Source: Schizochytrium sp. TIO01
Lineage: Eukaryota > Protista > Bigyra: Labyrinthulomycetes
DNA length: 64,000 bases
Assembly: GCA_004764695.1 (NCBI GenBank)
Contig: SMSO01000034.1
Location: 1,364,001-1,428,000 of the forward strand
Reading direction: 5' to 3'
The first letter of the stretch is position 1, and the number at the start of each line of letters is the position of its first letter. The notes under the pieces were generated by a model, which made no database searches, had not been told where the DNA came from, and saw only the letters and a list, made by a program, of their open reading frames with translations. The position numbers and the translations under genes are program-made. Shown here piece after piece: positions 20,445 to 44,079 of the stretch.

Positions 20445-21309
20445 CGCAGATTTGCAGACTCACGTATCGCCGACGGTCAATCCAACGATTTCGCGAAGCT
20501 TGAGATCCCGAGCGCTGCGGAGAACTTGAAGGCGGTCATCGGCAGGCGAGAAGGCCCATCCCGCATGCATGTGCAGGCAAAGTTTCCCATGCACGTGGAT
20601 GGGATTGTGTCGTGCGATTGCATCACTGCTGACACTGCTGTGCGATTTGCCACCAGAGAACGTCGACCTCGAGGTCCTCTTCGATTGGGCAACCGATCCT
20701 GCGAATGATGCCCATCGGTGGCGTAAACTCCACGCTGGATGGCCTGCCTCAAGGCGCTTTAGCGAGCTCGCTTCACTGCGCTGCGCTGGAATTGGTTTGC
20801 AGCCGCAGTTCTCCCCTGACAGGTCGGCAAAACCGATTAGCCGCCTGGGTAAATGTAGACAGCGAGCAGACGGTCTCCAAGAAAGCGTCGCCTTCGCCGA
20901 GCATGGCCTCGAGTCGAAGAGCGGCAGCGTCTGCTCAGAGGCAAGACAAATGATGCTTGGACATTAGCCCATCAGTTGAGCAATTCCGGTGTCGCTGCAG
21001 CGTGAGAACCGGAGGCCTTGCTCCTGTCCACGTTGCCGTTCTCCACCTCCACAACGGAAAGCGTTAGGCACAGTGATGTGATAGAAGCATCGCATCGACC
21101 CTCGTCCATGTTCGGGTGCCGCTCAAACGGCCAAACGAAACTGGAGAATCGACGTCTCTGCGGAAATGGTCGCTGCGATGCTCTCTCTGCTGATCTCGTG
21201 TCGATTGCAATGAAGAAGACCGCATCCATTCATTCATTCATTCATTCTATTTTGGTTGAGATTGGGTTGCAGCAAAAGCACATGACAATGTGGAGTCGAA
21301 ATGAACACA

Positions 21310-21377
21310 AATGAATGATGAATGAATGAATGAATGAATGAATGAATGAATGAATGAATGAATGAATGAATGAATGA
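21310..21377. repeat. (ATGA)n microsatellite
   Basis: Directly visible. Confidence 0.95.
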
Positions 21378-21909
21378 AATCGCAATCGCGAGAAGAACTT
21401 CAGACTTTTGCGCTTCGCAGCTCCAAAGAGCTTCAGCCTGGAAGAAGAAAAGCTTTTGCGCATTCATGATCCGAACAAACAAAGCATTCATTACAGGTAC
21501 TTCGTTAGACTCGGCGGGATTAAAATAAAGTCGCGGGAGTTGGAGCAAAGCTCGAGCTGATGCCTCCTCCCTTCGAGGAATCGCAGTTCCTCCGCAGCGA
21601 AAGCGAAACGAACGACAGAAGAACCGACAGGTACTGCAGAAGATAGTTTACTCTTCAAGAAACTTGAACCACTCGCTCACTCACTTGAAATAGAATAAAT
21701 GCAATTGATTCGCTCTTTCTCTTCAGGTTTAGAACTTCGACAATGCTTTTTTCTCTTTCCTCTTTCCTTCGGTTAATTTAATTTAATTTAATTTAATTCA
21801 ATCATAAAAAAAGCTTTTTAAACTCATCGATAAAGATCATTATCATTACGCTACTGGAAACTATAATAGTAATCACAATAATGGTGAGAAAATTCATCAA
21901 TCAAGTAAG

Positions 21910-21940
<31 letters not shown>

Positions 21941-22533
21941 AACTAAGTTAAAAATCAATTAATGAATTTTATTTTTATTTATTTTAAATAAAAAGGATGA
22001 ATGTCCGTCAATCAAAGGTGACCGCCGTAGAACAGCGACGACTGGCTTCTTCTGCACTACATAACCCCTCACCGCCTTTCGTACCCTTCATTACTCACCT
22101 TTAACCTCCGCGTCCTGGGGGTTATTTAGGAAGTGAGTGTACCTGCTTTAAGTCTCCAACGGGACAATAACTAGGTAACATACCCCCTACCACTCTTCCA
22201 CTTTTCTCATTATAATATGTAAACGCGTGGGAAGAGCTAGCCGGTCTGAGAGGTAGGGTGGAAGAAGCAGCAGGAAAAGAGATGGAAGGGGAATACGGGG
22301 AATCATGGCAGGCGCCATCTTAGTTGTGGCGGGAACCAGAATTCGATTTGAGCGTCACCGCCGCCGCCGCTTGGAGCGGGGCCTATTAGCGGGAGCAGGC
22401 GCCAACGGCGTCGTCCTTACGAAGCTTCGAGGCCTGTCTGAAAGCCAAAGTCAAAGCTTGGAGTTTGCCAGCTTGCCTACTGGCCGGCTGCGCTGCCGAT
22501 CGGCGATTGGCGACCTCGGAAATCCTCTCTCCC

Positions 22534-22540
22534 TATAAAA
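22534..22540 (+). promoter_or_regulatory. Candidate TATA box of the Dispatched-like gene
   Basis: TATAAAA sits in GC-rich context with ATTGG (reverse CCAAT) at about 22506. No ATG occurs between here and the start codon at 23063. Confidence 0.45.
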
Positions 22541-23062
22541 GGGTAGAGAAAGGAGTAACTCATCTCGAACCTGAGCTGGCTGAAGAGGAGGAGGCATCGC
22601 AGTCTGCGAAGAAGGCCTCAGACGAGATCCTCCAGCGTGAGTGCTTATTGCAAGTAACCTTAGCTTCTGGTGCTGCAAAGACAGCGTGGTGTTCTCGCCG
22701 AGCACGGTCGTTGGCTTCGTCTTCAATCTTACTATTAGCAGCAATAAGAGCGGTAAACTGAAGACAGCAAACCTCGTGAACTCCGAAGATCTGAACCGAC
22801 TGTGCACACTTGGCGCGCACGTCTCAAAACTAAAAAGCAGAGTGTGGTACTTGCTGGGATCTAAAGAACGATCAGATCTTGAGTAATTGCGGGAATCTGA
22901 CGGCCCGGAGAGTTGGTCAATATTACGAACCAACCAGTCTCGTCAGTCACCTACACACAGACGATTTTTCACGCACCCAAACGCACTTTCTTAAATTACT
23001 GAAGACGATAGTTTCTTAAGTGGACAGAACACGGATACACAGATACACATATTTCGGACACT

Positions 23063-26000
23063 ATGCATGCCGAAGCAAAAGCACAAGAGAAGCTTAGTCT
23101 AGCATGGGCCTTCGCGGCCAGATTTCCATGCCTGATTTACATATCTATTCTCATTATTCTGCCAGCAGTGTCGATTCCAGCGATATTCCTCACCTCGGCG
23201 AAAGATATTACTCTCGAAACTGATTTTGAGGACTATTTGACCTCAAGCGAACCTGCCTCACAGGAGTATGAGACGCTCGCAAATCTTCTTGCAGACTATT
23301 CATACCCGGTGGCGACTAGTTCTCCCACATCAGCTCCTTCGAGAAACCGAAGGGCGTTAAGCTCCTCAAGTGTTACTGAATACCTAGAGCTCATTTACTA
23401 TTGTGGTTCCGATTGCACTTCAATCTTCACTGAGGCGAAAATTGAAGCTATTCACACTTTCGAAACGAAATTCAAGTCCAGCATTTACAGCTCTTACTGC
23501 CCAATCGACAGCGATACCTCCGAGTGTGTAACACCAGACTCCCTTCTGAACTTCTTTTATCCTACAGTCGATGGATCTACTATTACCTTCGATGGTGAAG
23601 GCAGTGAAATGATCAGCATTTCATCCGCTCTCCAGTATATTGAGGAAACAAGCGACACCAGCGACCTCTGGTATTTCCCTCGCTCCTTTGTGGAGGACGG
23701 AGCGAATATTTCACTTGCTCGATCCGAGTACCGTCTTGTTTTTGACAGCGATGATGCAATGACTGCAATGGTAAAGGAAACCTTGTTGCCGTTCCTTAAT
23801 GAGCATCTAGAACTCGGTGCAAATGTTCGTTTGATGTGGTACAACAGTGACATCAACTCAATTGAAGTTTATGTGCTCATTCTCAACGATATGAGATTTG
23901 CTGCTGTTTCGTTGGCCTTTGTCTTGGCATGTATGTTTTTCCACTCTCGGTCTGTCTTCCTTTCTATCACAGCTGTTTACTCTATCGCGATGTCATTCCC
24001 TCTCACATATGTGATTTACACCTTGGCCATTGGCAACGAGGTGATGATGATCTTCAACTTTACAAGTGTTTTTGTTCTTGTAGGAATTGGAGCAGATGAT
24101 TTTGCTATCTTCGTTGACATCTGGGGCCAGAGCCGAGAGCTGCCCGGATTTACCCTTGGTGATCGCTTGAGGTGGACCTGGCGTCGCGCTGCTGGTGCAA
24201 CGCTTGTCACCTCCGTCACCACTGCGGCTTCATTCCTAGCAAACCTTGCAAGCCCAATTAACCCAATCCAAGAATTTGGTCAATTCATGGGCGTGCTGGT
24301 AATCGTCAACTATGTATTCATCATCATGCTGCTCCCACCTGCGCTTGTCATCCACGATCGATACTTCTATCACTTGTATGACTGCTGTACAATTCCTATT
24401 GGGAAAAGGATTGAGAAACGGAGGCAGGAAAAGGCGCAGGGCAAAGCAGCTGCCGCTGCGGCTGAGACAAACGCTGCCACTGAAACCGAGGCCAGACCAG
24501 GTTCTTCACATGTAGAACGCGAGTCTGATGAGAGAACCCACGTAGAAGGATTGCCGGCCTCTGGCGCTTCGTTCCAGTTTACTCGCGGATCATCTTTACA
24601 CGAAACTCGTTCTTTTCCATTTGCTCAAGAGACCTCTAATCTATCAATAGACTCTGAACCGGTACTCTCAGAAGAGGTTCCTGTGGCTAGAGTTGGTTCT
24701 AACCATTATCCAAGTGCTCCCCCCGCTGAAGAGTTTGTTCATTCTCCAACATCAGTCAACTCAGTCAACTTAGATGTCCCATATGCTACTGAAACATCCG
24801 AAGAGGAGGTATTGCGTAATCAGCAGCAAGCTGAAGCAGAAAATGTAGAGAGACAGCCATACCTGGTTCGCTTCTTTTATGTTTACATCGCTCCGTTCGT
24901 GTACAAACGCCGCTACTTCTTGGCTGCTGGTTTTATTGTACTGACAGCCATTCTCGCTAGCTTTATGGGTACCCGTGTTGCAATCTCCGATTCTCTGCCA
25001 GACATTTTCGGCAACAACACAAACCTTGGACTCTTGCTTCAAATTCGCAGTGAATACTTCTCGGATACAACGATATCCTCATCATCAGGTAGCTCCAGCG
25101 GTTCTACTGTCACGGCTTGCGTGGATAGCTCTGGTTCACTCGCCACTTGCACACCGTCGCCAACCTCAGAGCCAACCACATTGATTCCCACCTCCCGACC
25201 TACTACTCAAAATCCAACCTCGCGTCCGACCTCAGAGCCAACTGGTCAACCAACTGCAGCACCTGTTTCCACTCCTGCGCCCACTCTGAAGCCAACTGGT
25301 CAACCAACTTCCCCAACTGTAAGACCAACAACTCTGAGCCCTACTTCGAGACCAACACAAGCCCCTACCCTTCAGCCTACTTCAATTGTACTTCCATCCT
25401 CCCTACCGAGTATGGTCCTGATCGTCAACGGTACAACATTGATCTCTCACTATGGAACAGATGGACCTACAAATGGATACATTTACTCAACAGCCGATGC
25501 TAACGCAATTTCAACCACATTGTGCACTTCGTCTCTTTCTGGTAGCTCCAGTAACTCTGTTTTTGCTGTTGAAGATGGTAGTGTGGGAGACTGCACTCTT
25601 GATCAGAAGCTGGAAAATGTCGTCAATCAGTTTAGTGCGACTGAGGTCCTTATTGCTATTCACCAGAGCAGCAGCGAGAATTCTACTTCAAGTAACAGTC
25701 GCTATGCGACCACAATTGATGAAACTAACCTGGCTTCTATTGTCTCAGCAACCTCTCTGGCATTTGGGCCTCCTCTTGTTGTCACATACTCTTCTTCTGA
25801 TTCTCGTCGTCAACTGCAATTTACCGGGGGCAGCAGCAACAACAACAACAACAACTTTGGATTTGGATCAACTACGAACCAGGTTAACCCTACTTCAGCC
25901 CCGACATCCAGTCCGACATCACAAACGTCAAGCGAGATTTTGTCAACTTTAAGCCCCACTCTTATATTCACAGATTCTTCAGGAGTAACGAGTGTCGTAA

Positions 26001-28601: not shown

Positions 28602-29388
28602 GGTCTTAATGTGAGTGAAATCGTGTGTGCGACCCAGTGACACAGCAAGGTGCCCCTGTGCTACGTTTCTCGCATCGCTCTCGCCAATACATAAGGGCTT
28701 TGATCAGCTGCCTCGTAAATCATATTTCTCCGCGCCAGTGCACACCTTGCAAAGCAGGGTCGGGAATGACTCTAGGAGTGGTTATTATTACAACAACAAA
28801 GGTTTGACCGTAATATGCCATGCTTATGAAATAGAATCACCTTCCTATCACCTAAAAAGCTACGTGAAACTTAATGTATTTGATAGGAATGGGCACGAGG
28901 CAAGTGATAGAGAGGAAGACTAATATGCCTTGACAGATTTAGGAAAGGATTAATCTTTAGAAACTAGCGTCTCCTTAGTTTTAGTTCTGAAGAAAATCAT
29001 CCCATGGTTTCGACCTGCTTTTCATCATTGTAGACCCTGCCAGGCATGAATAGTACTTTGCATCGTGACTTGATTAACCAAACCATACTCAATACCAATG
29101 TTAGGTAGCATGATTATGCTTACAAGCGACCGAGTGACTCGGGCATGCTAATCACTGGTCGTATATAAGGAAAAAGGATCGTAGAATTCTGGATCAACAA
29201 TTTCGATGATGTTTATCAAAATTGAGCTTGTGTTTTGCGCTTAGAAGGCAGGAGATTCTCAAAGCATTTGAGCCGCTAGGCACTAATAGTAAACCTTAAA
29301 GCATAGGTATTAGAAGCACACTAATAGCAGACAGCGTGTATGTTCCCTGCATTACCATTCATAAGGAAACAGGCGAAGTTGTGTTTGC

Positions 29389-29425
29389 AAAGCTCAAAGC
29401 TCAAAGCTCAAAGCTCAAAGCTCAA
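29389..29425. repeat. (AAAGCTC)5 heptamer repeat upstream of the Coa1-like gene
   Basis: Directly visible. Confidence 0.9.
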
Positions 29426-29606
29426 ATCCTCTAGCAGGTTTGCAGAGCTCTTGTCGAACATTTCCTCTCTGGCTGCGTGCACAAGCGGACCAGACACGAG
29501 TCTAATTCTGTTCAATAATCGGCAAACCTCAAGCCGCAGCTGCTTTCTTTATTTTCATCTAAAGCCCTAGTCGTGAGCTTTTCTTGTGTAGACAAAGACA
29601 TACAGC

Positions 29607-36808: not shown

Positions 36809-37540
36809 GGGAAATCACGATTACCTTAGGAACGAAATGGTGCCGCGAATTAAATCACAGACTTTCACACATCAATGATACACAAGCCAACAACCTTGAG
36901 TTCGGCGTAGCCCAACTCATTTTGAAGCACTACGCGAGATCATTAAATTTCTTGATTACCTAGACCTAAATTCCTTGGTTTTCTTCATCTTGCTTTTTCT
37001 TTTGAGTTCTCCCTATTTTTTGGAACAACCTTAATAGACTCCTTACTCAATCGAAAATTTCTGTTCCTGCGCTTCCCCGTGGAGAATATTGGTTTTCTTC
37101 GCTGCCAACCTCTGTGAAGTCTTATTTTCCAAACTATCACTGAAGACACTTACATTAAATAACCAATGTAAAGCAATCCACAGGAAATCCACGCCCTGAT
37201 AAGACCTAGCCCATCAATCGCAAGCTTAAATGCTTTACTTGAAGCAGACGACGCCATTGGCAGCCCGAATACTTCTAGTTTGCTTGAGTGGTAGGTTAGA
37301 ATAACTGTTACTAGAAGTCAAACCTTGAACAGACTCGTATCACTCAAATACTTTTCTTTGGTGGTCGGTCACCTAGCAAGCAAACCTGATCCCCTGCAGT
37401 ATCGTCAAGCACGTAGAAGGGCACGTAGAAGGAATTCATCCTCTTGTTTTCAACCATAATCTTCCGGAAGAAGATTTTCTTAGCGGAAGAGAACCACGTG
37501 GAGCTTGAATTGCTAACTTTTGCCTGCATTCTTGGGCGTC

Positions 37541-38395
37541 ATGGCCAAAGGTCGCAGCAAATCGAAACAAACTCCAACCGGCGCCGCGAGCAAGAAAGCC
37601 AAACACGGCGGCAAGGCGGCCGGTAAGGCGTCCTCTGAAGTTCCTGCTGGAGGGCACAGAGCTCCACGGGACCCTCTCGAAGGTAAAACCCCCGAGCTTA
37701 AGTCGAAGGGTGTCTCCCTGCCGCTTTTGCCGCCTGAGCTTGAAAGTGCCGAAAACGACATCGAGTCCGACGTGGACTATTCATCTGTGGAGAATATTGC
37801 TGCTTTGACGCACGTCAAGATTGATCTAGAAAGATATTCGCTCCTGAGGGACCTTATCTACGGCGTGCCGAGAGCGATTTCTCCTGAAGAGTGCCAAGCT
37901 TGGATCTCCTGGGGCGAGAACCACGGCTTCGAAGCCGCAAGACAAGCTGCCAGCGCAGGCTATGCGCACAGAGATAACGGGCGTATTAGTGTGCACAGTC
38001 CAGAAGTTGCGGCAGTGATCTTTCAGAGGCTCCGAGGTGTCGTGCCACCTGAGATTGACGGACGAAAAGCTGTGGGTTGCAGCCCAAACATTCGACTGTA
38101 CAGATATATTGTGGGACAAAGGTTTGGGAAACACATTGACGAATCAAATTTTGAGGAGGAACTTCAGGCGTGGTCAGAGTTTACGCTGTTGTTTTACCTT
38201 AACGACGAAGACCTCGAAGGCGGCGAGACTGTCTTTTACAGCGGCAATACTGGCACGAAAGAGGCGCTTCGCGTGCCTCCACAACAAGGTCTTGCTTTAC
38301 TACACTGGCACGGAGACCGGTGTCTTGTACACGAAGGTGCAAACGTTCGGTCTGGTGTGAAGTATCTACTACGTTCTGATGTGCTTTATCAGTAA
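37541..38395 (+). CDS. 2-oxoglutarate/Fe(II)-dependent oxygenase (prolyl-4-hydroxylase-like)
   Basis: Motifs RLYRY..GQRFGKHID (HxD), TLLFYLN...GGETVF and HEG..V..G.KY.LRSDVLY. Confidence 0.9.
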   Translation: MAKGRSKSKQTPTGAASKKAKHGGKAAGKASSEVPAGGHRAPRDPLEGKTPELKSKGVSLPLLPPELESAENDIESDVDYSSVENIAALTHVKIDLERYSLLRDLIYGVPRAISPEECQAWISWGENHGFEAARQAASAGYAHRDNGRISVHSPEVAAVIFQRLRGVVPPEIDGRKAVGCSPNIRLYRYIVGQRFGKHIDESNFEEELQAWSEFTLLFYLNDEDLEGGETVFYSGNTGTKEALRVPPQQGLALLHWHGDRCLVHEGANVRSGVKYLLRSDVLYQ

Positions 38396-38399
38396 GAGA

Positions 38400-39569
38400 A
38401 TGCAAATACAGCACATTTGGCAGGAGTTGGAAAGCCGCGTTCATGGGCGTAAACCTTGGCCTTGGCTCGTGGTTCCTGTGCTCGCAGGGCTTTCTCAGGT
38501 GTGGTCTGCTGCTGCCGTGACACGCGAAATTGCGTACGCATACTTTCCAAGTTTGTCTACAAGGCTGCCTGTTGAGCGCTGCATTAGTATTGGAAATGTT
38601 TCTGTCGGGGGGACCGGGAAAACACCGATGGTGCAATTTCTTGCCCGTGAATATGCAAAGCATCATACAGAAAATCTCTCAAAATGTATGGTCTTAACCC
38701 GTGGGTACGGAAAGGATGAAGAATTTGAGCTTCGATCTACTCTGCCAGGTGCCATAATTGTGGCTGGGGCGGACCGCACTCGTCATGCCAAATCCTCTTT
38801 AGCTGCACATTCTTCATCGCATTCCCAAGTGGATACCATCTTGCTTGATGATGGCCTTCAACACCATCAAATTCGTCGAGATATAAATATAGTCATGGTC
38901 AACGCTTTAAATGGCTGTCAAGGGGGCTATACTTATTGTTTGCCACGAGGTCCACTCCGGGAGCCTTGGGCTCGGGGCCTCACACGTGCAGATGCAGTGG
39001 TCTTGCACCATGGATCGTTGCTTGACATAAGTCAACGCCAGAAGTTATGTGAGCAGCTACAATCATACAGTTCGCATCCTCTTCGATTCTTTGCTTCCGA
39101 TATGCGACCTAGTGTAGACAAACTCAAACTCTCTCGCAAGAGCCCTGATCATCTCATTCTCGTCTCTGGAATCGGATGCCATGAAGCTTTCGAGCAAACA
39201 GTACGCCATGCCTACCCAGCATTCAAAAATGAGATTGAAAATTTTCAATACAGTGACCATTATAAGTTTACAGAACAAGATCTACTCAAAGTACTAGCCT
39301 GTGCATCATCAAAACCAGGATTCAGTCTCATTGTAACAACCGCAAAAGACTTTGCACGTACACCGGAGGTGTTTCAGAAAGTATTTCCCTCTACTAAAAA
39401 GTGCGAACTCCTTGTGCTTGAAGCTCGTCTGCAGATCACAAGTTTTGACAAAACTGAAGATTACGATGAAAGTGACGAGGATGAGCCAAACCAAAACAAA
39501 CGGCATGTGCCAAGTTTTGGTTCTCAACAGGACTTTTTGCGGCTTGTATTTGGTAAAACCAACTACTAA
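38400..39569 (+). CDS. lpxK: Tetraacyldisaccharide (lipid A) 4'-kinase
   Basis: Motifs SIGNVSVGGTGKTP (P-loop), LTRGYG.DE, ILLDDGLQH, LPRGPLREP, SGIG...F, Y.DHY.F and IVTTAKD. Confidence 0.92.
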   Translation: MQIQHIWQELESRVHGRKPWPWLVVPVLAGLSQVWSAAAVTREIAYAYFPSLSTRLPVERCISIGNVSVGGTGKTPMVQFLAREYAKHHTENLSKCMVLTRGYGKDEEFELRSTLPGAIIVAGADRTRHAKSSLAAHSSSHSQVDTILLDDGLQHHQIRRDINIVMVNALNGCQGGYTYCLPRGPLREPWARGLTRADAVVLHHGSLLDISQRQKLCEQLQSYSSHPLRFFASDMRPSVDKLKLSRKSPDHLILVSGIGCHEAFEQTVRHAYPAFKNEIENFQYSDHYKFTEQDLLKVLACASSKPGFSLIVTTAKDFARTPEVFQKVFPSTKKCELLVLEARLQITSFDKTEDYDESDEDEPNQNKRHVPSFGSQQDFLRLVFGKTNY

Positions 39570-39659: not shown

Positions 39660-42600
39660 CTACCGTCGAGTTTGCTTGAGGTACATCTCGACGAGCTGTG
39701 CGGGTGTGGTAGCATCTTCTGGCCTTTTGTCTGTGCGAACTCGAATAAAACGAGGAAAACGTACGGATAGTCCTCGCTCAGAAAATCCACCTTGTCCATC
39801 AGGGACAAGGCCGCGGGCAGCGGTCGCATTTTCTGACAGTGTCAATTCCGCGCCGCGAATTTCCCACACCTGGGATGCACGAAACCAGGCACGGGGTTGA
39901 TGCTCTGCATCATAATCCAAAGGTTTGTGTGTTAGCATGCGAGGAGAACCCATCACTTCGTCGTCTACATCATTGGGGTCATTAGAATCGCCATCTTGTT
40001 CGATCTCATTACCATTGTAGAACTCGTTTTGGGATTCGTAAAAGGCGTCGGTGAAGCCTGACATGCACTTGCAGACTGCTCGATATACCTCTTGATCTGG
40101 ATCCCAGCATGCAAGAAGAAAAGGGGACCACCATTTTGCTTTGCGGCCTTGACCATGCCAACCACCAATCGGCACAAGGTCTAAAGTGTCGCCCAATCCC
40201 CCTCCGACCAATTGCTCTCCAACATCTTGGTCTGTAATGTAATCTTGTTTGAGTTTTAGCCACACGCTGCTCCGGTAATTGGGCTGATATGTCGCACTTT
40301 CGTGATCAAGGAGTTTAGCCATCAATCCTTCACAGCTATTGTGGAGAGCATCCTGCATAACCTTCATCATCGCTTCGATTTCTTGCGCACGATTTTCTGC
40401 ATCTACCGGTTCAAAATCTTGCGACTGCACGAGTGCAAATCGCCCAGGGAGAAGCTCAAAGGCATCTGTCAGACGTGCGCGTCGTTGTCGCAAGGGTAAA
40501 TCCATGAGCGACTCACCATCAAAAGATATAAGATCGAAAGCAAAGACACATAATGTGACTTTGGCGTCGATTATAACAGCTTCATCATTTTTGCGTGCTC
40601 TTGTACTTAAAGTTTGGAATGGCAAGATCTTAACCTCATCTGTGCTCCGATCCACTGCAACAACTTCTGCGTCAAGAATAAATGGCTTGTTTTGAAACTT
40701 TTGAGCATCACGCATGATCCCTGTTACCTCGGGAAATCCGTTTGTACTATCTCGACAGTGCCGGCTATATATGCAAAACTTTTGCTCAGGTGTATAATGG
40801 ATCTGGATGCGCTGACCGTCATATTTGTACTCGCATGTGAACGCCCCACGTCCATCAAATGCATCCATAAATTCTTCTACACCATGGCACACATTTGCGA
40901 GCATGGGGCGTACCGGAATTCCAGGCGTCATTGTACAAGCAGCCTCTAATCCTTCTATGCCGTTACCTTCGATGAGACCCATTACGAATCGGCCCATATT
41001 TGGCACGCAATTGAAAGCTGCTCTAGCTCGGGAAACTACATCCGCGATGGTATCGCTGGTGGGTGGGTCAGGTGCACGACTATGCCATAAGGCTGCTTCA
41101 GCAAAAGAGTCTAAAATAGATGCTTCACTAGCACCAATGCGCAGATTGCGAATGAGCATACGAACGAGATAACGTGTCTCTTCACCTACACAGCGTCTTA
41201 ACAATTTCAAAACTAGATCAGTGCGCCGCTTTTTAGAGCCTGTGCCCTTTTCATCGCTGATTTGACGCAAAGTATCAAAAACAAAAGATACCGTCAATGG
41301 TTGTTTTTGCACGCCAAACAAGGTTCGCTGGCTCATTTTACATTGGTAGGCCACATCACCAAGATCGCCAGTATCTTTGTAAAGTTTTCTCATCTCTGCA
41401 GCAGTCGTACCCGTTGCACTACGTATAGCTTCGGAAACTATACTTCCTCCGACAGAAAGCTCGACGCCCTCGTATTCATTCGCAATGCGGCCCATTGATA
41501 GTGAAAGCATTTTAACAAGCATATCAGGTTCCTGAGTTATGGCCAGACCACATCGGAAAGCATTCACGAGCACATTATGCTTTTTGAGGCGTTTCGTAGT
41601 CCCAGAGGTTAATTTAAGAGCCTCGATGAGTACTGCGAAGGGTACATCTTTGAGGTTGCTTTGCGATGGTGGCGTAAACACAGGTATTTCGGTGGCTAAG
41701 TCAGGAATGATGACCTCAGTTGGTTGCGCCAAGGTATTTAAAAACGACCCAGAACTGCCTTGAGGCTTCTTGCCTTCCTTCGATATAGCATGAGACATTG
41801 CTGATATTTGTTTACCTTCGTATTGAGTGAAAAGGTCTTCTTTATCCTCAATTGATACGCTCTTGTTATTTTGTGAATGAATTGAACTCTTGACTGGAAT
41901 ATTATCCGCCTGAGGTGCTGCTGGACGAACTTGCTCAACTAGACTTTGCGGGGATGAGACTGATTGTGGATTTGTAGTGCCTGTCGCCTTGGGTGCATTT
42001 CTGCTGCTTGAATTTGAAGCAGATGAACCAAAGTTGAACTTGAAAAGGGTTGGGATATTTCCCGCCTTTCGCTTCTTCACTGGCGGAGCTGAAACCTTGG
42101 GTAAAGGCTTTGATACTACTTGTTTCGGAGAAGGCCTTGGTGTTTCACAAATAATACAAACGAGCCCATTGGGGTTTGCGTTTAAATAGGTGCATGCTGT
42201 ACAGCTCCAAGAATTGGAATTGACTGCAGAGAGTGTACCCATTCGCGACTGTAACTCTAAGTTATTATTCGTCACATTATCCTCCGACACCTCATCTTCG
42301 TCGTCCAAAATTTCTATAACATGATCGCAATCAGCACAATATACGCCAGAATTATTTTCACAAAGTTTTTGTTCTTCGTTTGGATAGTCTTCGCCTAACT
42401 TCTGCAAGCTTGCTGACTTAGTCTCAGGTACTTTGCAACTAGCTAGCGACGGTGTGTCTGACGTATTTTCCACCGATTTGTCGTGACCATCACTCAAGTC
42501 ATCATTCATTGATGATGAGCTAGGGGCCTTCGTAAAAGCAGCTAGAAACTTGCGTTTCGCCTTTCCCTGATCGATGTAGTGACGAAAGCGATGAACAATT

Positions 42601-44079
42601 TTCCGTTGTTCATGAGGGTTCGAAAAGACTGTGGGATAAATCTTTCCAGGTTTTAGAAAGCGAACAAATGCTTCCAATTCTGGAAAGTTAGAGTGTTCTG
42701 AGTATGGTATGAGGTTAACCATCATATTTCCTTCGTCATTGATTCGAGATCTGTTCAACTTATTCCAGTTGGAAGACTCCGCCCAGCCAGTAGGCAGGAA
42801 GGCAATGACTCGGTCAAATCGTACATTTGTCTGCTCTCGAATATTGTCAAGGTATTTTTGGATATTCACAAAGTTAGGCTGGAAGTATGGCCACACATCA
42901 CCTGCAGCGCCCATGCGACACATGTGCACCTGGCTGCCAAGATCTGCACTAAGCATAGCGGCACGTTCTGGAGGTAGTTGCAAACATTGCATGACCTTGC
43001 GTTTGCGCTCTGAGGCGTAAATCGCCTGGCTGCCTATAGCTTCAGCTACACCAAAAACAATACGCTCCTTGCCAATTGTGTACGCTGAGATCATGACCAG
43101 GGTTTTGGCGTTTGGATCAGCCTCAACAAACTCTTTTGCCTCCATAGCAGCCTTCTTTATTGATTCTTCTTGCGTGGGAAAGACATGCTTTGGGTTTGCA
43201 TAAGTTGTATCCAAGAAAACTGTGTCGAGCTTCCCTCGCACCTTTTGTAATGACTCATACTCCTCCATTCGTGGGGCGTACCTCATATCACCACAATGTA
43301 GAAATAACGAATTGTCTTCGTGACGCCGCACAAGTAGAAGGGCAGATCCAGGCGCGTGGTTTGCATCAAGAAAGGTAATTGAGAAACCTTGGAACTCAAT
43401 TTCCTCATTAAATGGATACGACTTCACCAAATGGGGAGCTACACCCATGACTTGTGTCAGTAAATCGGCTGTGATCTTCGTGCAATGCACTACTCCACCA
43501 TCCCACTGGTCTGAGAGTCCCGAGTAGCTACGGTCACACAAATTTGAGGTGAGCACACCAATTAGTTCGCGGACACATTGTTATTCATCATCCATGCACT
43601 TGCCATTTATTCGTTAGTTTTGTCTTCCCACGTCAGCATTCCCAATCACAGATGTCTTCTGTCTAAACGTACTGGTCCCCATGAAAATGCGAGAGGAACC
43701 GGACAAACGGCGGATATTCAGGTTTCTGGACCTGCAGAGCATCATCTTCTATTTTGACACCATTCCTAGCTTGTGAAATGGCGTCACCCTGAGCTTCTCC
43801 ACAATTGCTATCTCTGGTATTGCCTTGCTCTTCGTGCTTAATTTCCGCTGTTTTAGTTGCAAGCCTTGTTCTGGTGCTCCTCCTCGTCGGTGCTGTGACC
43901 CCACTACTAACGTTTACCTTATCTGCCTTACTATTCACTGCCAGCTGCCGGGCCTTCTTACGCCATGCCGCATCCGGCAAGTGCGGTGCGACCTCTGCCA
44001 ATATCGCCTCTAGCGGTCGAAAGTAGTCCACAAGACACCACGTGCCAGGCACTAGATGGGCCTCGCCAGCGGAGTTCAT
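39660..44079 (-). CDS. LIG6-type fusion: SNM1/Pso2 MBL-beta-CASP nuclease + RanBP2 zinc finger + ATP-dependent DNA ligase; exons 44079-43673 and 43527-39660
   Basis: Removing a 145-nt intron (43672-43528, GTACGT...CGTAG) restores FLSHFHGDHYSGL. Nuclease motifs are DANHAPGS, HCGDMR, LDTTY, YTIGKER and PYSEHS. The zinc finger is WSCTACTYLN...CIICETPRP. Ligase motifs are EYKYDGQR, EGLMAK, WLKLKQDY and RFPRFIRVR.DK. Confidence 0.92.
43528..43672 (-). other. Spliceosomal intron of the LIG6-type gene (phase 2)
   Basis: GT-AG boundaries. Splicing joins CA|C to give the last His of the HxHxDH motif. Confidence 0.88.

Follow-up and report, generated by a model that had tools for sequence, protein, structure and literature searches.

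An ATG-depleted oxygenase gene directly upstream of lpxK in the thraustochytrid Schizochytrium sp. TIO01: a candidate leaky-scanning unit

Introduction

How can a eukaryote express two nuclear genes that follow one another on the same strand with only four nucleotides (nt) between them? The question is raised by a locus of the thraustochytrid Schizochytrium sp. TIO01, in which an open reading frame (ORF) for a 2-oxoglutarate/Fe(II) (2OG/Fe(II)) oxygenase, here called ORF A, is directly followed by ORF B, a gene for the tetraacyldisaccharide 4'-kinase LpxK. The pair lies in a stretch of 64,000 nt (contig SMSO01000034.1, positions 1,364,001 to 1,428,000 of the forward strand; hereafter the window) of assembly GCA_004764695.1, which comprises 64 Mb in 37 contigs. 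Positions given below are those of the window unless another sequence is named. The initial annotation of this window, made from its letters alone, had proposed that a single messenger RNA (mRNA) encodes both proteins by re-initiation or leaky scanning, possibly as a lipid A-like modification module.

Besides the green algae, a few further lineages have been reported to possess other polycistronic systems. Leaky-scanning polycistronic nuclear mRNAs are documented in green algae (PMC7896298, PMC11291117), where depletion of ATG triplets upstream of the second ORF is the signature of leaky scanning (Gallaher et al., 2021, PMC7896298; PMC11291117) and where the addition of one ATG to ORF 1 abolished expression of ORF 2 (PMC11291117). 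Full-text literature searches found no report of polycistronic leaky-scanning mRNAs in thraustochytrids or other stramenopiles. The analysis presented here suggests that the oxygenase–lpxK pair is probably one transcription unit yielding two proteins, in which ribosomes gain access to lpxK by scanning across an oxygenase ORF purged of ATGs. The best explanation of the unit is that it belongs to the leaky-scanning polycistronic class already known, in a lineage that is new for this class.

Two complete reading frames at one junction

ORF A ends in TAT CAG TAA, which is followed by GAGA and then by the lpxK ATG at position 38400, on the same strand and in a different frame, shifted by +1 from that of ORF A. 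From position 38361 onwards, the lpxK frame is free of stops. These coordinates and frames, re-derived from the sequence, agree with the initial annotation, and the two complete ORFs 4 nt apart are confirmed as genuine and not an artefact. The remark that other same-strand pairs are widely spaced holds as well, given that clean neighbours in the window lie 732 and 860 nt apart; the guanine plus cytosine (GC) fraction is 0.46–0.53 in ORF A and ORF B versus 0.39–0.42 in these other same-strand spacers. A feature absent from the earlier description is the ATG at position 38379, located inside ORF A and in the lpxK frame, which would give an optional LpxK of 396 amino acids (aa), longer by 7 aa (MCFISKR-).

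ORF A matches the Pfam family PF13640 (2OG-FeII_Oxy_3; E 3e-9, 38.1 bits, cut-off 27), its only match in Pfam, and has no match in NCBIfam at E ≤ 0.01. The iron/2OG residues (HxD...H...K) are intact, with H198 and D200 invariant and H264 and K274 found in at least 90% of the alignment. ORF B matches PF02606 (LpxK; E 2e-48, 165.9 bits, cut-off 27) over profile positions 4–314 of 328, and also exceeds the cut-off of the NCBIfam lpxK equivalog TIGR00682 (103.6 vs 91.95 bits). The P-loop (Walker A, GxxGxGKT), DDG.QH and LRE motifs are all present, the residues invariant in the LpxK alignment being G70, G71, G73, K74, T75, P76, D150, D151, Q154, R187 and E188, and ORF B aligns to the Aquifex LpxK structure 4EHX over residues 55–206. 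ORF B is thus predicted to be a full-length LpxK kinase.

The facing ends of the two proteins resemble those of proteins encoded alone. The oxygenase C-terminus, DVLY[KRQ] followed by a stop, is common to 15 stand-alone relatives from stramenopiles and other algae in the alignment. LpxK M1 (ATG 38400) falls in the alignment where stand-alone LpxKs begin, and the first 45 residues after it retain the helix motif P-x-L-x-x-L-S-x-x-[WY]. Judged from these alignments, ORF A and ORF B are both complete with native ends and would yield two proteins.

For both proteins the closest relatives come from thraustochytrids, namely Hondaea fermentalgiana, Thraustochytrium sp. (MMETSP0199) and Mucochytrium quahogii, and both ORFs recur near-identical (~99%) in Logan, JGI and MMETSP assemblies. 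In these, the oxygenase entries P0121 and P0171 terminate in DVLYQ. The LpxK entries P0001, P0167 and P0170 begin MCFISKRMQIQ, the gene callers having chosen ATG 38379, which indicates that the LpxK calls read through the overlap as in the window. Furthermore, MMETSP Transcript_14994 holds both ORFs, called as g.29193 (P0167, 396 aa) and g.29194 (P0171, 284 aa), and these calls leave stop codon, spacer and overlap intact. Thus, the junction is transcribed and unspliced.

An assembly or sequencing error, in which a 1-nt indel has split one fused ORF, has nothing beyond the odd geometry in its favour. At least five further assemblies or alleles of ~99% identity (P0001, P0167–P0171) show this junction with an identical stop and frame relation, and the stand-alone oxygenase relatives share the C-terminus, so that the likelihood of such an error is negligible.

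A spliced in-frame oxygenase–LpxK fusion requires closer consideration. As had been noted, a GTAAGA donor-like site overlaps the stop, and it is present at position 38392. In sequence and phase this CA|GTAAGA resembles the real donor CA|GTACGT of a 145-nt intron 5 kb away (43672–43528). Candidate splice joins across the junction were checked by script for an open frame, and the only in-frame acceptors for the donor are AG 38434 (43-nt intron), 38551 (160 nt), 38563 (172 nt) and 38587 (196 nt). This agrees with the earlier reading that the CAG sites at 38411, 38423, 38487 and 38498 are out of frame and that 38434 is in frame. Introns of 160–196 nt would be realistic in length, and a Hondaea gene model (P0002) is a fusion. 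However, the acceptors are AAG or TAG, which are weak and lack a clear branch site, the candidate introns have a coding-like GC fraction of 0.52–0.54 versus 0.43 in the real one, and use of the longer candidates would cost LpxK its conserved N-terminal helix. The MMETSP transcript retains the stop and the overlap region, and no fused product of the window species (~620–660 aa) occurs among database proteins of up to 680 aa, the sole fusion being the Hondaea model. A fusion would also give no reason for the depletion of ATGs described below, and it is considered very improbable. The initial annotation had named an indel and a spliced fusion among the findings that would overturn it; the first is ruled out by the recurrence of the junction and of the C-terminus, and the second is opposed by the unspliced transcript and the lack of a fused product.

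The Hondaea fermentalgiana entry 'Tetraacyldisaccharide 4'-kinase' (P0002; 545 aa) carries PF13640 and PF02606, with LpxK directly after the oxygenase. The model passes from ...RSDVL into LpxK 45 residues past its start, its predicted intron taking out the final two residues of the oxygenase, its stop and ~45 N-terminal residues of LpxK, and ~110 C-terminal residues are missing. The window contains no donor of the Hondaea type (after DVL). Given this absence and the missing C-terminal residues, the fusion looks like a predictor artefact, which further argues against a fusion in the window species. Unlike P0002, in which the two parts are joined by a predicted intron, the transcript assembly of the window species has two separate ORFs. 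The gene model shows that Hondaea has the two orthologous genes, adjacent and in the same order, and conservation in related genomes, a check suggested with the initial annotation, is therefore found for order and adjacency. The two species also share a methionine (Met)-free oxygenase, with 0 Met in the 294 residues of the oxygenase part of P0002 and 8 Met in the 250 residues of its LpxK part.

ATG depletion of the oxygenase gene

From the start of ORF A to the lpxK ATG, only two further ATG triplets occur in any frame (859 nt; 2.3 per kb). The comparison was made in a genome sample of 264 kb, consisting of the window and two 100-kb blocks, in which the remaining 57 ORFs with a length of 250 aa or more contain 12.0–30 ATGs per kb (median 20.4, minimum 12.0). 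None of the 1011 sliding 859-nt windows in these comparison ORFs has fewer than six ATGs. The first 418 nt of ORF A have no ATG, where about eight are expected, and the absence of any internal Met is unique among the sampled long ORFs. The ATG-bounded span of 1149 nt from 37230 to 38379, with only two ATGs inside, is the longest of its kind on either strand of the sample. The lpxK ORF has 24 ATGs (20 per kb), a normal density.

The depletion extends to synonymous sites. When the same protein was re-encoded with the codon usage of the genome, 10.9 ± 2.3 ATGs were obtained, and two or fewer in 0 of 5000 trials. Dipeptide sites able to carry an out-of-frame ATG realise it in 2 of 22 cases, versus a background rate of 0.57 (binomial 4e-6). 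Similarly, NAY codons before a G-initial codon end in T twice and in C 14 times in ORF A, and in T 16 times and in C five times in lpxK.

The two surviving ATGs, at 37962 and 38379, stand in contexts at the 8th and 6th percentile, respectively, of 63 gene starts scored with a start-context matrix; the matrix is crude, and some of the starts may be misplaced. The 18-codon ORF opened by the first stops 382 nt before the lpxK start, a distance at which ribosomes using it could still reinitiate, and neither of the two ATGs would block translation of lpxK. ATG density proves to be an inexpensive way to screen protist genomes without annotation for such units, from sequence alone. The features of the locus are collected in Table 1.

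Table 1. Positions of the features of the oxygenase–lpxK locus in the window (P4H, prolyl 4-hydroxylase).
Feature	Position	Strand	Remarks
ORF A, predicted P4H-like 2OG/Fe(II) oxygenase	37541..38395	+	284 aa; Lys-rich N-terminus; ATG start; stop TAA 38393-38395
ORF B, predicted LpxK (tetraacyldisaccharide 4'-kinase)	38400..39569	+	389 aa; full-length; P-loop GGTGKTP; N-terminal helix motif
Leader/promoter region without ATG, 5' of ORF A	37231..37540	+	310 nt; nearest upstream ATG 37230
Out-of-frame ATG opening an 18-codon ORF inside ORF A	37962..38018	+	Poor context
lpxK-frame ATG within the 3' end of ORF A	38379..38381	+	C at -3; very poor context
Junction: donor-like CA|GTAAGA over the TAA stop, then 4-nt GAGA	38392..38399	+	Sequence inspection

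Proposed expression mechanism

Given that ORF A contains almost no ATGs, LpxK is probably translated by ribosomes scanning through it. In the mechanism proposed here, transcription would begin 5' of the oxygenase ATG or in its vicinity and would traverse both ORFs with no splicing at the junction; the ATGs 5' of ORF A lie at 36837, 36875, 37166 and 37230. The oxygenase ATG would take most of the ribosomes, and LpxK would be made by those that scan across the oxygenase to ATG 38400 (or 38379). This could occur by two routes: (a) on a dicistronic mRNA whose oxygenase ATG is bypassed by leaky scanning, or (b) on transcripts of the unit that start just 3' of the oxygenase ATG. Selection would have purged ATG triplets over the whole oxygenase ORF, keeping the scanning path open, and since the purge covers all of ORF A, the start site for lpxK is expected at or near that of the oxygenase itself. 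A single mRNA, the scanning route and a low-level output of LpxK are inferred.

On a dicistronic mRNA, LpxK might instead be produced by termination–reinitiation at TAA-GAGA-ATG, or by +1 frameshifting within 38361–38392. A distance of 4 nt between stop and start is favourable to coupled reinitiation, ORF A begins in a strong start context, and the lpxK frame is open through the region in which a frameshift would take place. However, reinitiation in eukaryotes is inefficient after an ORF of 284 codons that lacks a dedicated element (discussed in PMC11291117). The junction showed neither a stable RNA fold (z +1.18) nor an Rfam match, no slippery motif was seen in 38361–38392, and neither mechanism accounts for the ATG depletion. 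Reinitiation or frameshifting is accordingly judged improbable. The initial proposal of one mRNA and two proteins is thus upheld in part: two proteins, a tight unit and scanning are supported by the native ends, the unspliced co-assembly on the MMETSP transcript, the ATG depletion and the gene order in Hondaea, whereas re-initiation is disfavoured, given that there is no element at the junction and that it would leave the depletion unexplained.

Several observations weigh against scanning through ORF A. The ORF A start (GCGTC ATG G, with G at -3 and G at +4) lies at the 81st percentile and is strong, whereas the start context of ORF 1 is weak in green algae. With such a context the leak should be small, unless some transcripts begin just downstream of the ORF A ATG. 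The lpxK ATG at 38400 reaches only the 13th percentile on the crude matrix. Shuffling of ORF A's own codons, the most conservative control for the depletion, gave 5.3 ± 1.6 ATGs (p = 0.04). Long ATG-free leaders are also fairly common in this genome, the nearest upstream ATG lying at a median of 141 nt and at 600–786 nt in 5 of 58 genes. The Met-free state also occurs in related oxygenases, namely that of Mucochytrium quahogii (P0124) and the entries P0122 and P0172, and no LpxK was found to go with them; either the trait predates the pairing, or the databases lack their downstream ORFs. Lastly, the longest contig with this LpxK ORF measures 6655 nt, about the distance from the start of ORF A to exon 1 of the convergent ligase gene downstream. 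The assembler appears to merge overlapping neighbouring transcripts, and the co-assembly of both ORFs on a short-read transcript is weak as support for a single mRNA.

Two overlapping but independent mRNAs would offer another explanation, in which the start site of lpxK lies in the last few hundred nt of ORF A, the oxygenase mRNA is polyadenylated inside lpxK, and the tight spacing reflects mere genome compactness. Given the merged 6655-nt contig, this is compatible with the co-assembly of the two ORFs. Extreme packing is tolerated in this genome, lpxK and the convergent ligase gene having their stops 90 nt apart. In addition, a second pair of this genome, with a SNAPC1-like and a HAD-like ORF overlapping by 11 nt, has ATGs purged only from the end of ORF 1: the last 1009 nt contain 0 ATGs in any frame and the first 1329 nt contain 23. 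This 3'-only purge suggests that internal start sites, with leaders of ~1 kb, exist in this genome. However, the purge in ORF A runs from its second codon, which a start site near its 3' end would not need. Overlapping independent mRNAs are regarded as unlikely, and scanning through ORF A within one transcription unit is retained as the probable explanation.

A wider proposal is made more tentatively. Thraustochytrids may express some of their nuclear genes as true leaky-scanning polycistronic mRNAs, among which the oxygenase–lpxK unit would be conserved and would predate the split from Hondaea, and the SNAPC1-like/HAD-like and other pairs would be further cases; the evidence at present leaves this generalisation somewhat doubtful.

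The oxygenase and its relatives

The nearest solved structures of ORF A are prolyl 4-hydroxylases, and the closest to the oxygenase profile is Bacillus anthracis P4H 5HV0 (E 6.5e-9). ORF A is therefore predicted to have a prolyl-4-hydroxylase-like activity; its Lys-rich N-terminus is not informative about the substrate. The oxygenase family is widespread in stramenopiles and green algae. In a scan of metagenomic loci with the oxygenase alignment, lpxK was found near 0 of 80 relatives, and the association of the oxygenase with lpxK was found only in the window species and in Hondaea. Tight downstream ORFs at two of the loci (L003 and L027) were rejected, as they are spurious frames opposite real convergent genes.

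The bacterial enzymes LpxO and KdoO, which hydroxylate lipid A or Kdo, are Fe(II)/2-oxoglutarate-dependent oxygenases. ORF A belongs to the same broad class of enzymes. Unlike LpxO and KdoO, it matches only PF13640, has prolyl 4-hydroxylases as its nearest structures, and has relatives unlinked to lpxK. Neither Pfam nor NCBIfam gave a match to any family of lipid A or Kdo hydroxylases. The suggested lipid A-like modification module is not supported by these findings, nor by the dispersal of the other lpx genes on other chromosomes. A functional link between the oxygenase and LpxK is unsupported.

A 314-aa database entry named 'Tetraacyldisaccharide 4'-kinase [Durusdinium trenchii]' (P0125) has the oxygenase domain only and is 68% identical to ORF A. 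Its name seems to have been propagated from the Hondaea fusion model, and its sequence may represent thraustochytrid-like material within a dinoflagellate assembly.

LpxK and the lipid A-type pathway

In a maximum-likelihood tree, the LpxKs of the window species and Hondaea are sisters (100/99), their LpxK parts being 52% identical. They nest with Klebsormidium, Chlorokybus and other eukaryote-like LpxKs (clade 100/98), and the window LpxK thus groups with those of streptophytes. This placement indicates that lpxK has long been a eukaryotic gene, part of a plant-like pathway of lipid A type, and is not a recent bacterial import that arrived with its operon. According to the account of Li et al. 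(2011, PMC3136250) that is given in PMC3355754, this pathway is nuclear-encoded and mitochondrion-targeted in Arabidopsis.

Further genes of the pathway were located as uninterrupted open frames on other chromosomes: an LpxA-like frame (C24:4401906-4402061) and homologues of LpxC (C30:3896562-3897527) and LpxB (C30:2526796-2527842). The N-terminal domain of LpxD was not detected in this genome, and the LpxC and LpxB loci have no comparable tight upstream partner. The organisation resembles that of Arabidopsis, as far as the same second-hand account describes it, in that a eukaryote carries dispersed lpx homologues (in Arabidopsis lpxA, lpxC, lpxB, lpxK and kdtA). It differs in that the window LpxK, encoded by the second of two paired ORFs, has no N-terminal targeting extension or presequence, and in the lack of a detected LpxD N-terminal domain. 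A dispersed Raetz-type pathway in a heterotrophic stramenopile is worth separate attention.

The N-terminal half of LpxK was used to look for partial lpxK ORFs on short transcripts of other thraustochytrids, and none was detected. This search did yield a 274-aa fragment of a eukaryote-like LpxK from Logan (P0173), which is 46% identical to the window LpxK and has a long basic N-terminal extension that looks like an organelle presequence.

Comparison with green-algal bicistrons and implications

The unit of the window, known from its sequence and from a short-read transcript assembly, shares with green-algal bicistrons two independent complete ORFs on one strand, in different frames and with a very short spacer. 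In green algae the ORFs are often in different frames too, and at some Auxenochlorella loci stop and start overlap. Depletion of ATGs upstream of ORF 2, the lack of a structure resembling an internal ribosome entry site, and maintenance of the arrangement in related species are likewise common to both. Apart from the start context of ORF 1 considered above, the unit differs from the green-algal cases in its lineage (Labyrinthulomycetes, Stramenopila) and in the length of ORF 1, which is 855 nt versus medians of ~300–600 nt.

If the proposed mechanism is true, leaky-scanning polycistronic expression has arisen outside the green lineage and extends to stramenopiles. It would also account for the mis-annotated Hondaea 'fusion', whose name has passed to other entries such as P0125. 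Furthermore, the unit would provide a native two-gene expression design for the engineering of thraustochytrids that produce docosahexaenoic acid.

Genome setting and other ATG-poor stretches

The genes flanking the pair are eukaryotic and encode a KH-domain protein and an SNM1–DNA ligase I fusion. The latter, a fusion of an SNM1/DRMBL nuclease with DNA ligase I, occupies 39660–44079 on the - strand. Its 145-nt GT-AG intron (GTACGT...TAG) restores the HFHGDH motif. With only 90 nt between the stops of lpxK and the ligase gene, the convergent 3' untranslated regions must overlap. An upstream short ORF (29340–29570) was discarded as a simple repeat and is no gene.

Two further closely packed ORF pairs were noted outside the window. 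The SNAPC1-like ORF (782 aa, PF09808) lies on another chromosome, within C30:7371001-7381000 (- strand, 6125–3167) and overlaps the start of the HAD-like ORF, which has 206 aa and an FDMDQT motif. At C30:2020850-2023842 (+ strand), a 140-aa ORF (20850–21272) with a normal ATG density (14 per kb) overlaps an 857-aa ORF (21269–23842) by 4 nt in an ATGA-type arrangement; this could be one gene with an intron or a frameshift, or another abutting pair.

ATG-free gaps of at least 400 nt number 33 in the 528 kb of strand of the 264-kb sample, far above chance. They tend to sit just 5' of long ORFs, for example 758 nt before 23063 and 786 nt before blk1:61508, which suggests either long ATG-purged 5' leaders or unrecognised upstream exons.

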